DNA of 62,219 bases, filler included, from Choristocarpus tenellus KU-1152 (Eukaryota; Protista; Phaeophyceae): the NCBI GenBank assembly GCA_964200185.2. It is 11 parts of 11 records of this genome, joined end to end, with 100 filler letters (N's around TTAATTAATTAA, not from the genome) between each part and the next. Parts side by side here need not be neighbours in the genome. Positions count along the whole stretch, not along the records: positions 55,282 to 62,219 come from CAXNAD020007011.1; 10 more parts are not named here. One strand, written 5' to 3'. Position 1 is the stretch's first letter; each line of letters starts with the position of its first letter. Made by a program: the position numbers and the translations under genes. The notes beneath the pieces are model-generated. The model made no database searches, was not told the origin of the DNA, and saw only the letters and a program-made list of their open reading frames with translations. Below are positions 54,928 to 62,219 of the stretch, one piece after another.

Positions 54928-55346
54928 CTGTGGCATTGAAGCAACAGCAACACTGTGTATCTGCTTCAAAAAGCTCATGTATTAACCAAAGTTCGATATT
55001 TTCAACACCGGAGAGAGGCCAGTAAGAGACCAGCGACAATGACATTCAACTGCCAATGAAAAGACATTATGGACAAAAGTTGCACATTTGATGTGCTGCG
55101 GATTTCATTTGTGATATTCCAAATCGGTAGAGACCCAAAGTATCTGGGAGGGGGGGGGGTCTACACCAAGGTGTCCATTTGNNNNNNNNNNNNNNNNNNN
55201 NNNNNNNNNNNNNNNNNNNNNNNNNTTAATTAATTAANNNNNNNNNNNNNNNNNNNNNNNNNNNNNNNNNNNNNNNNNNNNGGGGGGGGGGAGTGGAGTG
55301 GAGTGGGGCTGCTTTTCGCAAGACTTTGAAAATATAGGCGGGCAGG

Positions 55347-55436
55347 ATGGGGAACATGCCAGTGGTGGAGTTGGGCAGCAGAAAGGTTCGAGTTAAGCGA
55401 CTGCTCATGGAAGGGGGCTTTGCTTATGTTTACAAG
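55347..55436 (+). CDS. First exon of a NAK-family (GAK/AAK1/STK16-like) Ser/Thr kinase
   Basis: MGNMPVVELGSRKVRVKRLLMEGGFAYVYK|gtgagg. EGGFAxVY is the NAK-type glycine-rich loop. No further kinase exons were recognised downstream in this contig. Confidence 0.7.
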
Positions 55437-57440
55437 GTGAGGTGTAAGATGTCATGTCAATAAAAGTGTTGTCACCACAGTGAAACAACCCATAGGGTGA
55501 GGATCCTTGTTTGGCCAGAGCGGGTTTCGGCTCACACAAGATGATATTTTTAGGGGGTGATGGTTGAGCGTTAGAAGCAGTGATTGCCAGAAGAAAGGCC
55601 TCCACCCTAAAGTATGTAGTTATTTCCCCGGAGTTGTTATGGCCATCTCATAGAAATATTTGCGAATAATTCCCCCCAGGGTGTGATGCCGGGGCAAGAG
55701 TCAAACAGAGTGTGTAGTACCTTGATGTGCACTCTACTGGCTACAGCCTTGCTACACCGGCAGGACAAACAGACCAGTGTTTATTTATTTTTTATCGGTG
55801 ATTGTATTGGGAACTATGTACAGTGAACTCGATGTCTTGTATACTGTAGGTTTCAAATGTACAGTTCTGGTGCCATCCGTAAGGTACAGTATAATAGCAG
55901 GCTAAACATCATCCATTATACCTGGGTATTGAATATGTCACGCAACTGTATGGGAGAGTGATGCTAGAGTATATAAATCTAAAATGTTGTGTTTGTTGCT
56001 TTTGGCAATGAGCGCACATCTTGGTTTTACCTGTTTTCCTTTTCCAGCATTCCCCCCCCTGCCCACCCCCAATCCCCTCAACACATTCCATGAGAAGTCT
56101 CTATCTGCTTCCTGCGTTGTGGTGCCTAAGGCTGTGCTTGCAGTGCTGAATCAGGACATCATTTGATTGTTCGGGTGATAAACACACACCGGGTTGACTC
56201 TATCTTGAGATGGTGTTTCGCATGTTGTTTAGAATTTTTTTTTTTTGATGTTGCAGCGGGTAGTGCTTTTGACGTGCTTTGAAATGATACAAGAAATATC
56301 GGAAGGAGAGAGCTTTTGTGCGTTTGTGTTCAATCAGACTCACTCGACTCATTTCAGTCGAACCAGGACCAAGAAGGCACCTACAGCGGTTCTTCTGGGA
56401 CCATGGGGCGACTGGAAGCTGCAGTTGCAGTTGTCTACATAAGTGCTTTAAGACTTGGACTAAACGTTTTGTCCAAGGAAGTAGGACTTTTCACCGAAAT
56501 GGTTATTGTTGAGGGACCAGGCTGCAGACCGGTCCCCTAAGAAGTACTGGTCTGTGGACCAGTCTCAGTACAATATAATTGAAAAGATGGCTAGTCCAGG
56601 GCTGTCAGAGATTATCTGGACCAGACAGCAGGTCAATCCACAGACCTGTTATAATGTACCTCGAGATAGATGATACAGAACCAGTCTGGTGAGCTCTCGA
56701 TTAAGTCTATTTTGATGAGAATAGACATGGTTGAAGGGCTTTTTCATGAAAATATATTATTTTCTCCTGTGTGTATTTTGGGACAAATTTTGGGATAGGG
56801 CCAGGATGTTTTAACTGTTTTAGATCTTTAACTGGACTGGGCCACAGGCAGGGCCTGCTAAATATTTTCTAACAAGACTTGCCTGAGGTAATCAGAGATT
56901 TTAACAGGATTGGGCCATGGACCAGCCTCCTGTTAAGTGTGTTTTATCAGGGTTGGTTCAGGGCTGTGAGAGGTTGTAACATGGAATGGGCTGGGTGGCC
57001 CTGCTCCAGGCAGCCAGTCTGGTTAACTGCCAGTCTGGTGAAAAGCCCAGCGAGAAAGAATTGTCATTCCATTATGGAGTGGATTGAAGAGTTGAAGGGG
57101 CCTTCACAAGTGCAGTACTTGCAACCTTTTGAAATTTTGGTGCAGTATGGTGGGATGGGAGTGGGCGGGAAATGATTTGACTTTTGGCAGCATGGCGTTG
57201 CTTGCCTGAGCAAAAAGTTAGTGAGGCGTTTTGCTGTGGTATCCTGGAAAGGAAAGGATATTGAGAGCCATAAATATTAATTAATGTGTAAATATTAATT
57301 AATGTGCAGCCAAAAGAAGTGATGACCCATTAACTTAAATCCTTTAGAGAATGTAAGTCTATGACTTAGTGCCTTGATCTTGATTTTTTCTGCTATCGAC
57401 AATAATATTATCGTTATTATTTTTTGCAAGGTCATATTAT

Positions 57441-57545
57441 ATGAGCAGTAAAAATCGAAAATTATTTATAAAAAATCACTTTACGAAAGCTGTAGCAGAG
57501 GTTGTAAAGAAACTTATTTTATTATTGGCCAGATCACTAAAGATA
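57441..57545 (+). pseudogene. sdhE: Fragment of bacterial succinate dehydrogenase assembly factor SdhE/SDHAF2, Rickettsiaceae-like
   Basis: Reads MSSKNRKLFIK, then (with one A missing from an A-run) KSLYESCSRGCKETYFIIGQITK. Compare the SdhE motif KKLxYxSxxRGxxExDxIxGxF, with the RGCxE variant recalled from Rickettsia. No intron, no targeting peptide, AT-rich. Confidence 0.6.
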
Positions 57546-57564
57546 GTAAATTCGTTATGAAAAA

Positions 57565-57714
57565 TTATTTACTTAGGAAAAACAAATTACCCCAAGAAAT
57601 TATGATCACAAAAAAAACGGCTGTGAATCTTTGATTCCACCAGTGTTTAGATCCAGATTTTGCTGATCCTGTTTTTTTTTCTAACAATAAATCTGTTCTA
57701 AAATCTTTTTTCAT
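57565..57714 (-). pseudogene. sdhD: 5' fragment of alphaproteobacterial sdhD (succinate dehydrogenase hydrophobic anchor), Rickettsiaceae-like
   Basis: ATG 57714 reads MKKDFRTDLLLEKKTGSAKSGSKHWWNQRFTAVFFVIIISW, then a frameshift and stop. GSAKSG.xHWxxQRxT is the alphaproteobacterial SdhD N-terminal signature. Too short for the ORF track. Confidence 0.75.
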
Positions 57715-58694
57715 ATAGTAATTACTCACACATGTTTCCAGTAAATTACCATCAAAGCAGTTGATTAGAGTGTTTTAGAAATATCTGAGCATGTATGCAA
57801 TATTCTTGAGTGTGATTAAAGATTTGTTAGATTTGAATTTATTTATCAAGAACATCACAAATTTTATATATGTTAGAAGTCAACACCAATGTGGGAATTT
57901 CTCCTTCATCCATTGGTCCAGTTTGTTGCTTTCAAAGGATAGGGTACATTCATTTGGTGGCTCAAGTTTTAGGGAGGCAAATCATGTGTGCAATTTGGAT
58001 AAAAGGAGAATTTACTTTCTTTTTTGTTATATAACGGGTAGCAGTGCAGTGCTTTTTGAACTGAAAGTATCTGATACAAATTTTAGCAGGTTAGCTTCTG
58101 TGGTTGGCCCCGTAGTGATCCATGGATGTTCTGTAGTGCTCTGATGACTGCACTGTCTCAAGTTGTGTTACAGCTATTTTTTGATAACATTAAGAATTGA
58201 AAGATTTTCACGATTTTTTTAATATTGAATTTAGCACGATATTTTTTTAAAAATATTTTTTTGAGGTACGTGATTGGGACTGAACTGTGCGTGCAGCTCA
58301 TGCAGTGAGGCGCTTCGGGGAAATTTCTAGTAAAGAGAATGTAGGTGGGAAGAAGTACCTGACCAATTGGAACATCTGGTTGATTTCTCAAGCATTTAAT
58401 TTGTGGAACCAATCCCAGAGCATTGTATCAGCCGGTGAGACTATATGAAAAATAGTTGTGATCATTGCAATGTTGCCCTTTAGGTGCATGCATAAGACTC
58501 TTCACACACTAAAGAACAAGAAAGAGTCGACACAAGCTTCGGGTCAATTCTTGTCATTATTTGAAGAACACTGAAAAGACTTCTTGACAAGTTTTGACAG
58601 TTTTGATCAGTTTTGTATAGAGGTACGTATGTTGACATACGCCAACTGATCAGCTTTTTACCAGGGCTTTTCACCGGACTGGCAAATTGAAAAA

Positions 58695-59050
58695 GTTCCG
58701 TCCACTGGCTGGACCAGTCCCACAATTATTTAACACATCCCATTCCATGTCCACTGGCTGGACTGGTCCCACAATTATTTAACACATCCCAGGCCATGTC
58801 CACTAGCTTTTAGACTGGTCCATGTCCACTGACTGGACTGGTCCCACAATTACTTATCATGTCCCAGTCCATGTCCTCTAGGTATTGGTCTGGTCCATGT
58901 CCACTGACTGGATCAGCTTAAACATTCTCTGACCATGTCGATTGGACAATTACTTATTCCCACAATTACTTATCATGTCCCACAATTACTTATCATGTCT
59001 GGACCATATCCACTCGACACTCTACTGGTCCATATCCACCAGCCAGCCAG
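58695..59050. repeat. Complex minisatellite
   Basis: Recurrent units catgtccactg(g/a)ctggactggtcccacaatta(tttaacacatccc / cttatcatgtcc). Confidence 0.85.
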
Positions 59051-59980
59051 TCTAACTTCTTTCCTTGCATGTCGGGACCATGGCTGCTGACCAGTTCAAA
59101 TATTTTTCTGGCATGTCCGGGCCATGTCCACTACATCTTATACAAGTCTTATCAATTTTGTTTGACCTTTCCATCCCCCCCAAAAAAGTGTGTACAGTAT
59201 ATCGGAGGCTAAGTTGACACACACACACACGCACACACACATACACACGGATCAGAAATCACCTTAGGCACCCAACAATGATTGGTATTAAAATTTGTAA
59301 TTTTATTAGTCGTTAAAAGAGTAAAATAGGAAATGATATGTATAGTATTTTTAATACATAGAGTACTTACAGTACAAGTATAGGATACAAGATTGAAGTA
59401 GAGTGAATTAGGGAGTGATGGCCATGACGCAGTCGGTCCAAGTGTAAAGAAATATACTACCTGACTGGCCATAGATAAAATGTTCTGACATGGCTGGGGT
59501 CACTGGCTGGACATATGTACAACTAAGTTTGAACCTGACCGAGTCCATGGCCATCGACCGGTTCAGCATGGCTGGACCATGGCACGGACCGACCTGTGTC
59601 TGGACCATATGGCCGACAGTAGACATGATAACTGCCCTGCCCAGTGAAAATAACTGGAAAATTTCCTTCCCTTGTTTATTTTTTCTTTTACTATTGACCA
59701 TTTATTATTGACCATTTGCTGAGAACCCTGTCGTTCAGGTTGGGCTTGGCTTTCACATCCTACCAGTTTCATATTTATTTGTATTGTGTGCCTCAATACC
59801 CTCCCTGTAAGGTATTAATATTTATTGCTCTATTCTGTGTTCTTCTAGTGTATGGTACTTGGTACTTGGTACCGTTTGCATTGTTACCTGCTTGGTCTGT
59901 TTGCTACTTGAACTGAGCAATACCCCCCCTCCCCCTCCAATACATTTTTTTCTCTTCCTTTTCATTTCTTGGTTTGTTAG

Positions 59981-61494
59981 TCAGGGGAGGATGTTCGGCA
60001 GGACCAGTTGGCTGTGCACATGATCAGGCTCATGGACATGCAGCTCAAGGAGGCTGGGCTGGATCTTCACCTTAAGGTTGCCTCACAATCCCACCTCCCC
60101 CCCCCTCCCCTGGAGCGCCTTAACTATCACTGCATGGTTTATTGTTAGGGTTAGGGTTAGGATGACATTTTTTTGTTTAGTCCATACCACCACTTCCTCT
60201 TTTGTGACCAATTACTCATATCCTTACATACTGAAGAACTTTATAGTCTGGGGACTTAAATAGTTTTGGGTTACTAATCCCTCTACCTCAATGAAAAATG
60301 CCTGAATCTCTTTATTGAAATCCTGGATGTCAAAGCAGATGTTGAGTTTGGTCTCCTCTGTTTATATAACAGTATGTAGGAGTATGCCAACAGTGATGGT
60401 GGATGTGTGTTGAACATCAAGCAGTCTCATGAATTCAAGAACTGTTTCCAATGAAGTAATTCTTCACTGCAGACAGAGAGAACCCTGTTGCATTTTGATG
60501 TTGGAAAAAGTGAGAATTTTTTTCTGTAATCCCATGACACAGTAGTGCTGGCTCCATGGATACCATCACATCCTATTCAAACTACCAACCACTCTCCTAC
60601 TGGCCAATCCTTGTGTGGTATTGTTTTTAAGAGGAGGGTGGGGGAATGAATATCAACTTTGGTGTTGGTAGTAATGATGCATCAATGAAACCTTGTTATT
60701 TATCAGAGTGCACCAGAGTGTAGTATATGCTGAATGGTATGGTACTTTGTCGGTAATCAATGATGGTGACCAATGTTGGTGATCAATGTTGGTGATCAAT
60801 GATGGTAATCAATTATGGTAATCAATCTTGGTGATCAATCTTGGTGAATTTGTGTGGTATGCCTCGGCACCTAAGACTTGCGCTTACATTGAGTGATGAT
60901 CTCAAGTCAGGTTTAGCCAATATTTTGGTTTATTTTATTTTGCATACGGGCAATTTAAACTAGTATTTTTTCACCTGAGTTTTTCAGCTTGAAGTGTGTA
61001 ACATGCATCTGGTTGTATCTGGTATAAAGTATAGAAAGGTGTTGACATAATTTTCTCCCCTGCCGTAAGCTCTGCTATGGATGGATTGCATACAGTATTA
61101 GTGTTGTTGATGCAATATCTTGACTTTTCCCATCATCCCCCCAAAGCCCTTTCACCCCCCGGACACATAAATCAATCTACCAAGTCCATACACTAGCGCC
61201 CACCCACCTATGAGGCATACCAATGACCTATGTTACTCTGTTCACTGACAACAATGACTAACTTGGCAATGTACTCATGAACTGTACTTGTTCCTTCTCC
61301 CCTCCCTCTATCCCATCTTGCTTAATTGATCTGCTGGCCCAACACTGACTGTGATGTGGGGGGCTGGGGGGGGGGGGGGTTGGATGGGTGAAACAGACAT
61401 ATCGGGTGCTGGCAACAGGATTGAGCACTGGCATGGTAGAGTTTGTTCCTGGCTCTATCCCCATGTCTGCTGTCCTTACCCAACACTGCAACAG
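59981..61494 (+). CDS. VPS34: Two exons of a class III PI3-kinase (Vps34-like) catalytic domain
   Basis: Exon 59981-60076 SGEDVRQDQLAVHMIRLMDMQLKEAGLDLHLK (cf. GDDLRQDQL..LMDxLLxxxxLDLxL). Exon 61397-61494 TYRVLATGLSTGMVEFVPGSIPMSAVL (cf. PYxVLAT..G.vEFv). In frame, GT-AG. Confidence 0.8.
60752..60847. repeat. Intronic 12-bp minisatellite, about 8 units
   Basis: ggt(g/a)atcaat(g/c/t)(a/t)t units. Confidence 0.85.
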
Positions 61495-62219
61495 GTGAGT
61501 TGCGTCAGTTACATCAGATGGTGCAGAACCGTGGGTGTATATGTATTGAGAGATGCTGCCCTTGTATTGTTTGCTTTTAGACAATTAGTAAAAATGTGAT
61601 CGTGGCATTGATAGTATTTATGTACTATTATTTTTTTATTTTTAGCTTTATTTTGAGTGTCATTGAAGGCAAGCTCATTTTCTGTATCGTTTTTTTTTTG
61701 TTCTGAGGATAGAGGAATTTATTTATTTTACTGTTTTGTCCATTGTGTGTGTGTGTGTGTGTGTTTTTATCTCAATCTTTTTTATTATTGTCACTTGTGA
61801 TTGTTTTTTGTGTGCCATACTTTGGTCCACCCTCCATCCACATAGTGTGGGGTACTCTAGTGTGCATGTGTTGAGTGTCTGCTATCTGCTTGGTCAAGTG
61901 GTACAATCTCATTATATGCTTATCTAGAGTATCATATGATATGTCTGAAAAGTATGGTCACATTGAAATGTGTCCCTATGGTCTCCTTCCTAAATATTTA
62001 TTATTTGGCTAACGCTGATATTTTGTAGAGTTTGTCATGTGGGAATAAGAAGCAGCTTAAATTCTGGTGATTGATCTTAATTAATCAATGGGATGAAAAA
62101 ACAAAAACAAAAAAATAACATATTGCATTATACCTTTTCTTTTTTTTTTACTATCCTTGAGCTCCTCAGACCTTTTGATTGGTTTACAGTAGATCATTCA
62201 CCCCCACCTTCACCTTCCC

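Follow-up and report, generated by a model that had tools for sequence, protein, structure and literature searches.

A Rickettsiales-like sdhC-sdhD junction fragment in a eukaryotic nuclear contig, probably part of a dead mosaic of endosymbiont DNA

Wolbachia DNA transferred to its hosts, nuclear copies of mitochondrial DNA (NUMTs) and nuclear copies of plastid DNA (NUPTs) have a common form: end-joined, short, rearranged and non-functional fragments, often several unlinked pieces at a single site. The subject of this report is an AT-rich island in a nuclear contig (record CAXNAD020007011.1 of assembly GCA_964200185.2), which constitutes positions 55282-62219 of a stretch of DNA of 62,219 nucleotides (nt), the window. 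The island carries a truncated sdhC-sdhD operon junction of Rickettsiales type and is probably a defunct mosaic of Rickettsiales-like DNA that was inserted into a non-coding part of the nuclear genome. The nuclear genome of Volvox carteri holds a Rickettsiaceae insert with 16S, murB, ddlB and ftsQ (Kawafune et al. 2015, PMC4324946). That insert is ~6-9 kb long, retains its gene order, matches living endosymbionts at 88-100% identity, has been confirmed by polymerase chain reaction in several strains, and has been read as the trace of a lost endosymbiont (PMC4324946). DNA of rickettsial origin is also reported from a fern, in the mitogenome of Haplopteris ensiformis (PMC10027690).

The kind of event considered here is already known from the Volvox precedent; this case is much smaller and its donor lineage is unsampled. 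As in Volvox, Rickettsiaceae-type DNA lies between host sequences, its genes are truncated, and a host transposon or repeat is nearby. In contrast to Volvox, the recognisable material amounts to ~190 nt and ~120 nt from unlinked genes at 50-60% identity, it is known from an assembly alone, and it includes sdh genes, which are not part of the Volvox insert. Short, rearranged, non-functional pieces in non-coding nuclear DNA are likewise what Wolbachia inserts, NUMTs and NUPTs consist of, but these usually show high identity to a known donor, whereas here there is no close donor and the lineage has to be deduced from 46 codons. With Haplopteris the island would have in common that a photosynthetic eukaryote (if the host here is an alga) carries DNA from Rickettsiales in one of its genomes; the recipient is a mitogenome in the fern, in contrast to a nuclear contig with spliceosomal introns and a PI3K/PI4K gene here. 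Compared with the sdhCDAB operons of Rickettsiales metagenome-assembled genomes (MAGs; loci L005-L011 and L054), the fragment is collinear in its 46 sdhD codons, its start, its spacer (11-12 nt) and its sdhC stop, but lacks ~80 of ~127 sdhD codons, the haem-ligand region FYHAxLGMQVIIEDY among them, the body of sdhC, and sdhA and sdhB.

The junction fragment occupies positions 57573-57764 on the minus strand, and these 192 nt are the entire detectable DNA homology. A DNA profile of nine Rickettsiales-type sdhC-sdhD loci (799 positions) matches them in an nhmmer search with an expectation value (E) of 8e-22 (67 bits), over model positions 348-539 only. Compared with the loci of Rickettsiales MAGs, the fragment as a whole has a nucleotide identity of 58-62%, which rises to 70-80% in the core; beyond ~57765 identity drops to background. 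In the direction of reading, the fragment consists of the 3' tail of sdhC, 12 codons (STALMVIYWKHV) recognised by translation within the nhmmer match and closed by a TGA stop at 57726-57728 (tail and stop together 57726-57764), an intergenic spacer of 11 nt that can be read directly in the sequence (57715-57725), and codons 1-46 of sdhD (MKKDFRTDLLLEKKTGSAKSGSKHWWNQRFTAVFFVIIISW..., 57577-57714) starting with an ATG at 57714. The sdhC tail was compared by eye with Rickettsiales SdhC C-termini (for example ..SVCLTVIYWLFM at L010), its TGA is aligned with the stop of the Rickettsiales loci in the DNA alignment, and a metagenome operon (L002) has a 12-nt gap where the 11-nt spacer stands.

Assignment of the 46 codons to sdhD draws on Pfam, TIGR02968, phmmer, tblastn and a custom hidden Markov model (HMM). 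The piece, whose peptide GSAKSGSKHWWNQRFT is the one quoted in an earlier, sequence-only reading of this DNA, matches Pfam PF01127 (Sdh_cyt) at E 8.5e-4 and TIGR02968 (succ_dehyd_anc) at E 8.4e-5 over profile positions 1-31 of 105. (Its 22.7 bits on the latter lie under the 41.8-bit cut-off for whole proteins, as only one third of the protein is present.) Among 1.84 billion proteins, one representative for each 50% cluster of ~15 billion, phmmer with the sdhD peptide yields 11 matches at E<=1e-3, the best at E 1e-5; ten of these are of SdhD length (89-163 residues) and 42-50% identical to the fragment. Rickettsiales SdhD queries find the fragment by tblastn at E 2e-13 to 6e-11, and the custom SdhD HMM, run over six frames, matches at E 6e-15 with positions 2-46 of 126 only. 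For two phmmer matches the contigs were read: P0009 belongs to a complete sdhCDAB operon, and P0001 follows directly on sdhC. On all these grounds the SdhD-like fragment proposed by the sequence-only reading is upheld, as a likeness well beyond chance. The top-scoring protein match, P0001 (L001:6001-6336, an ENA metagenome contig), is an SdhD with its C-terminal third swapped for unrelated GC-richer sequence ~130 nt from the contig end, possibly by a frameshift or a chimeric contig end.

A profile of related SdhD proteins retrieves from the PDB bacterial SdhD only (E. coli, Mycobacterium) and no mitochondrial SDHD chain. Retention of the stop/11-nt spacer/start junction implies that the source was genomic DNA of a bacterial-type operon and not a nuclear SDH4 gene, and the bacterial origin and operon type of 57573-57764 are well supported. 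(An exon of a host nuclear SDH4 was considered and is excluded by the bacterial-only PDB matches together with the preserved operon junction.) A very short fragment of an operon junction, comprising stop, spacer and start, can in this way prove a bacterial genomic origin.

Although the piece belongs to the SdhD family profile, the full-length anchor with its haem/quinone region and later helices is lacking, and the sdhC-sdhD-sdhA-sdhB context is reduced to the final 12 codons of sdhC with their stop and the spacer. The FYHAxLGMQVIIEDY core of SdhD is not found in any frame by an HMM search over six frames; seven SdhC proteins used as tblastn queries detect no sdhC body upstream, in 57765-58150; and the open reading frames (ORFs) of 13 sdh loci, including sdhA and sdhB at L002-L004, detect no other operon part. 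To judge from its extent, the sdhD piece is a gene fragment and not a functional member of the family. It is also truncated rather than simply decayed, because its N-terminal third is ~50% identical to its relatives and stop-free, while the more conserved remainder is wholly missing. Visible decay is slight, since the codons hold no stop. The sequence-only reading had described the piece as decayed and frameshifted. The second description does not apply: the fragment lies within an unbroken 54-codon ORF (57565-57729, minus strand), and its frame is disturbed only once, by an insertion of 1 nt near 57590, right at the end of the homologous stretch. Of the first, the part that stands is that this is a truncated, rearranged scrap of 192 nt; its condition is chiefly a matter of truncation. 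Two other interpretations of the same region were tried and rejected. A decayed full-length sdhD continuing through the region formerly called SdhE would require the collinear pairing of IIFDFYCSY with IIEDYVHSR, which scores only 0.7 bits (E 0.09), and the DNA profile ends at 57573, so that truncation is preferred. A functional sdhD restored by splicing could use a GT after W46 and an AG at ~57491, yet stops follow immediately in all three downstream frames.

The affinity of the sdh piece was examined in a scan of one genome per species for 185,579 bacterial and archaeal species (GTDB), with 490 confirmed SdhD matches. Each of the best seven of the 490 comes from a MAG labelled Rickettsiales or Rickettsiaceae (49-54% identity, E 1e-12 to 2e-10); other Alpha- and Gammaproteobacteria follow. 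The phylogeny of its two fragments that the sequence-only reading had proposed was run for sdhD, as a maximum-likelihood tree of 85 SdhD rows. The fragment falls inside a clade with all eight Rickettsiales rows (support 100/99), and shares with that clade the position of the start and the N-terminus MK(N/K)(K/D)(F/Y)R(S/T)DL. A single Holosporales row (L047) has a lower score and is located in another clade. The proposal that the sdh DNA is Rickettsiales-like thus agrees with the seven best genome matches, with the tree and with the DNA profile, and Rickettsiales or Rickettsiaceae as nearest known relatives of the piece are supported. GTDB genomes and JGI metagenomes, scanned for the exact peptide, and exact ORF look-ups revealed no closer relative or donor. 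In a word-index search no public protein of 38-120 residues had three 5-residue words in common with the fragment, and no recorded gene encodes exactly its product. One member of the Rickettsiales clade, L040, comes from a contig labelled uncultured Bacteroides sp. (CAZUHH010000006.1); its amino-acid make-up is odd, and the contig is probably mis-binned.

A second recognisable piece, on the plus strand at 57855-57974, is likely, in view of several partial matches, to be a C-terminal fragment of ddl, the gene for D-alanine--D-alanine ligase (~40 codons, ..ILYMLEVNTNVGISPSSIGPVCCFQRIGYIHLVAQVL). It emerged from a scan of all stop-free pieces of the island of at least 25 codons (~26 pieces), in which the frame 57837-58031 matched the Ddl C-terminus (NF002378, E 0.009, 14.7 bits, profile positions 259-299 of 305). 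A PDB search gives two matches only, both Ddl chains (positions 266-302 of 306, E 1.4), and Pfam gives none for this piece. With E. coli DdlB as tblastn query, the best match in the whole 6.9-kb part is at 57864-57971 (E 0.017), and the local score of that protein is reached by 1 of 10,000 shuffles (p 1e-4). The C-terminal motif LE(V/I)NTxPG(M)T..S..P of Ddl can be discerned by eye, and a comparison (also by eye, with the S1 File alignment of PMC4324946) sets LYMLEVNTNVGISPSSIGP in the piece against LYMLEVNTHPGMTPLSICP in the DdlB of algal Rickettsiaceae. LYMLEVNT is identical in the piece, in DdlB of the Rickettsiaceae endosymbionts of Carteria, Volvox and Pleodorina, and in DdlB of the Volvox nuclear insert; Rickettsia and Orientia deviate in this motif in the same alignment. 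For comparison, 20 control pieces, likewise AT-rich and stop-free but located outside the island, produced two unrelated NCBIfam matches, one of low complexity at E 8e-4 and one at E 0.037.

The ddl-like piece lies ~90 nt from the sdhC tail, on the opposite strand, at the place where a contiguous sdhC body would stand. If the piece is real, the island would be a mosaic of unlinked pieces and a purely mitochondrial source would be excluded; the scrambled mosaic of the sequence-only reading gains support to that extent. A 121-codon stop-free frame (57779-58141, plus strand; a 117-residue ORF from its ATG), unusually long for a composition of 33-38% guanine plus cytosine (GC), overlaps the ddl-like frame in a different phase. 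It has a low Atlas recognition score, and searches of families, the Atlas and contigs gave no match to it.

Composition sets the island apart from its surroundings. The genomic part examined, 55282-62219, has a mean GC content of ~43%; in a profile of 200-nt windows, GC is 25-31% at ~57270-57900, compared with 44-50% in the flanks, and a shoulder of milder AT-richness (34-38% GC) extends to ~58280. This is the deepest and longest GC dip within 55282-62219, and the AT-rich island described from the sequence is confirmed as such, though other dips exist. The contig is eukaryotic and nuclear, because the flanks hold PI3K/PI4K exons split by a GT-AG intron. These exons, each searched singly against PF00454, are on the plus strand at 59984-60076 (a catalytic-domain exon, E 0.0014, profile positions 9-37, with AG acceptor and GT donor visible) and at 61397-61494 (the next exon of the same domain, E 0.062, profile positions 41-71, splice signals visible); they are collinear and separated by a 1320-nt intron with GT-AG ends, in agreement with the spliceosomal exons that had been noted on this contig. 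The island is situated ~2 kb upstream of these PI3K/PI4K-type exons, within non-coding DNA, and a repeat search finds host-type repeats flanking it on either side.

The arrangement could be accounted for by ligation of the fragmented DNA of an intracellular bacterium into a chromosome break by end-joining. Since the sdhD codons are stop-free, with one 1-nt indel, the present state of the pieces would derive mainly from truncation and rearrangement at insertion and not from long decay. An origin from an endosymbiont is in keeping with Rickettsiales MAGs being the nearest relatives (or the fragment lying just outside their clade, as discussed below), and lack of function with genes that are truncated and rearranged, a ddl tail taking the place of the sdhC body. 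The donor family would probably be Rickettsiaceae, and the pieces, devoid of function, would presumably be drifting neutrally.

Several observations weigh against integrated Rickettsiales-like DNA as the explanation of the island. Both of its junctions are known from one assembly alone, which contains short-read-like poly-G runs. Searches, those with Pfam and NCBIfam among them, give no recognisable origin for the remaining ~300-700 nt of the island. AT-richness occurs elsewhere in the contig (31-32% GC at 59182-59481, 28% at 61582-61781 and 29.5% at 61982-62181). The ddl match is without formal significance given the controls, being one of ~26 pieces at E 0.009. Placement of the sdhD fragment comes from 46 residues on a long branch (1.63) and may be biased towards Rickettsiales by AT-rich composition, and mitochondrion-encoded sdh4 is absent from the tree sample. 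Although the clade has support of 100/99, a position outside this 13-row clade is not rejected by the approximately unbiased (AU) test (p 0.33).

These observations bear on different rivals. Entry of the island into the contig through chimeric assembly or contamination, from a co-sequenced bacterium such as a living symbiont of the Rickettsiales whose sdh operon is in decay, is unlikely. The contig has a short-read look, with poly-G at its start and internally, its AT-rich, low-complexity island edges could mislead a de Bruijn assembler, and the sdhD codons are as free of stops as those of a recently living gene. However, two false joins would be required, since host-type repeats and exons flank the island on both sides. 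A contaminant should, moreover, bring whole genes, whereas there are only 192 nt of sdhCD, with a ddl tail in the place of sdhC, and neither the word-index search nor the look-up of the exact product points to a recorded source. Slightly less probable again is a donor among other AT-rich alphaproteobacteria (Holosporales or an unsampled lineage), in which case the nuclear insert would still hold. The outcome of the AU test permits it, compositional attraction is possible, and the fragment is more distant (49-54% protein and 58-62% nucleotide identity) than Rickettsiales are from one another (62-85% nucleotide identity). On the other hand, all seven best genome matches are Rickettsiales, the Holosporales row scores lower and falls in another clade, the fragment has the N-terminal signature and the start codon position of the Rickettsiales clade, and LYMLEVNT in the ddl-like piece equals the motif of algal Rickettsiaceae.

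The mitochondrial DNAs (mtDNAs) of red algae, glaucophytes, cryptophytes, jakobids and some plants carry adjacent sdh3 and sdh4, are AT-rich and are of alphaproteobacterial descent. The sdh piece could in principle be a NUMT derived from such host mtDNA, with the likeness to ddl arising by chance. A mitochondrial sdh4 would group near Rickettsiales by descent, the tree sample held none, and the ddl match lacks formal significance. Nevertheless, this is an improbable source: NUMTs are usually far closer to mtDNA than the fragment is to any of the 1.84 billion proteins (no match above 50% identity), both matches whose contigs were read (P0001 and P0009) lie in bacterial sdh operons, and the 38-120-residue range in which no protein shares three 5-residue words spans the usual lengths of mitochondrial Sdh4. 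Furthermore, ddl is not a mitochondrial gene, and no piece of transfer RNA (tRNA) or ribosomal RNA was found (tRNA and Rfam searches of 55282-62219 detect no family). Some algal relatives of Mimiviridae encode SDH subunits and giant viruses insert into algal genomes, so the remnant of an endogenised giant virus carrying SDH genes also comes into consideration, more so with the AT-rich composition and the algal setting (if the guess of the sequence-only reading holds). It is a very remote prospect, given that none of 68 pattern matches in IMG/VR was confirmed, that the junction matches Rickettsiales DNA at E 8e-22, and that no viral hallmark appears in any island frame.

Integrated Rickettsiales-like DNA is accordingly the preferred explanation. 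If the junctions hold, the island would record at the molecular level that a eukaryote was once infected by intracellular Rickettsiales, adding to the few cases outside arthropods and nematodes, among which the main algal precedent is that of Volvox. A donor lineage unrepresented in current genomes would also be sampled, as identity to any known genome is only 50-60%. A more tentative extension, somewhat short of an even chance, is that the host (possibly an alga) is one with no known Rickettsiales partner, and that the island is a nuclear fossil of a lost, Megaira-like member of the Rickettsiaceae from an unsampled lineage, with further scraps to be expected genome-wide; such scraps could serve to date and identify the past infection. 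In practical terms the locus should be masked, or annotated as a pseudogene instead of a host SDH gene. It is without functional consequence for the host and, at ~300 nt in a single assembly, its weight is modest.

The other gene fragment of the sequence-only reading, an SdhE-like frame on the plus strand, is not supported. The letters RGCKET..IIGQ are present, within a stop-free frame at 57452-57631 (motif CSRGCKETYFIIGQ, ~57491-57532) that differs from the frame of the ATG at 57441. Seven tests were negative: there is no match to SdhE/SDHAF2 (PF03937, Sdh5) in Pfam or in NCBIfam at E up to 10, no SdhE chain in a PDB search with this frame, no homologue in a word-index search or the ESM Atlas, nothing at 57452-57631 with a local SdhE HMM (92 sequences) over six frames, and no relative among 328 metagenome stretches with an SdhE-like motif. 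(The HMM is narrow: its E. coli query gave Enterobacterales only and it includes no Rickettsiales SdhE, which limits detection of a very diverged scrap.) The R-G-x-x-E motif is present, C-S-R-G-C-K-E aligning with C-R-R-G-(M/T)-(R/K)-E of E. coli and Methylobacter SdhE. The residual likeness is a local match of 14 residues (shuffle p 0.007-0.02), and is at chance level because about one such match is expected among ~100 comparable segments of the island. The two frames were said to be convergent and about 20 base pairs apart; they are oppositely oriented as described, but the stop-free frames overlap at 57568-57631. Elsewhere, gammaproteobacterial loci (Methylobacter, L060:5837-6112, plus strand; likewise L018 and L016, with weaker matches in Arenimonas and Competibacterales) have an sdhE-like ORF on the strand of sdhD, ~2.8-3 kb beyond the sdhD start and at the expected end of sdhB; the SdhE HMM detects none in the Rickettsiales-type loci that were fetched.

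Repeats are abundant around the island. At its left edge is a perfect tandem duplication of 18 nt (57271-57306, plus strand; two copies of TAAATATTAATTAATGTG; families D2 and D18 of the repeat search). The island is bracketed by an inverted pair of 31 nt, 84% complementary, at 57028-57058 and 58654-58684 (1.6 kb apart), and likewise by an 18-nt pair at 56979-56996 and 58733-58750. The 31-nt pair could represent the ends of a non-autonomous transposon or a dispersed host repeat; blastn detects no longer arms to it. The pair belongs to a short motif dispersed in the flanks, where GGxCTTTTCACCGxAxTGG recurs, also at 56483-56502. To the right, 58695-59130 is a C-rich array of degenerate ~75-nt units (..CCATGTCCACTGGCTGGACTGGTCCCACAATTATTTAACACATCCCA..), related G-rich motifs are found in inverted orientation at 56380-57060, and GC skew changes sign across the island.

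Poly-G runs occupy the start of the contig (55282-55291) and 61358-61385, the latter in the intron that separates the PI3K/PI4K exons. The run at the contig start resembles an artefact of two-colour Illumina sequencing, and the assembly was therefore probably made from short reads. Close to it, on the same strand as the PI3K/PI4K exons, an ATG-initiated segment of 30 codons (55347-55436, plus strand; MGNMPVVELGSRKVRVKRLLMEGGFAYVYK) is followed by GTGAGG; by eye it resembles the first exon of a NAK-type Ser/Thr kinase, and Pfam gives no match at such a length. The intron after the first PI3K/PI4K exon also contains an interstitial telomere-like run at 60145-60161 (TTAGGGTTAGGGTTAGG), and 60726-60860 is a minisatellite of ~10 copies of a 13-nt unit (GGTGATCAATGWT).

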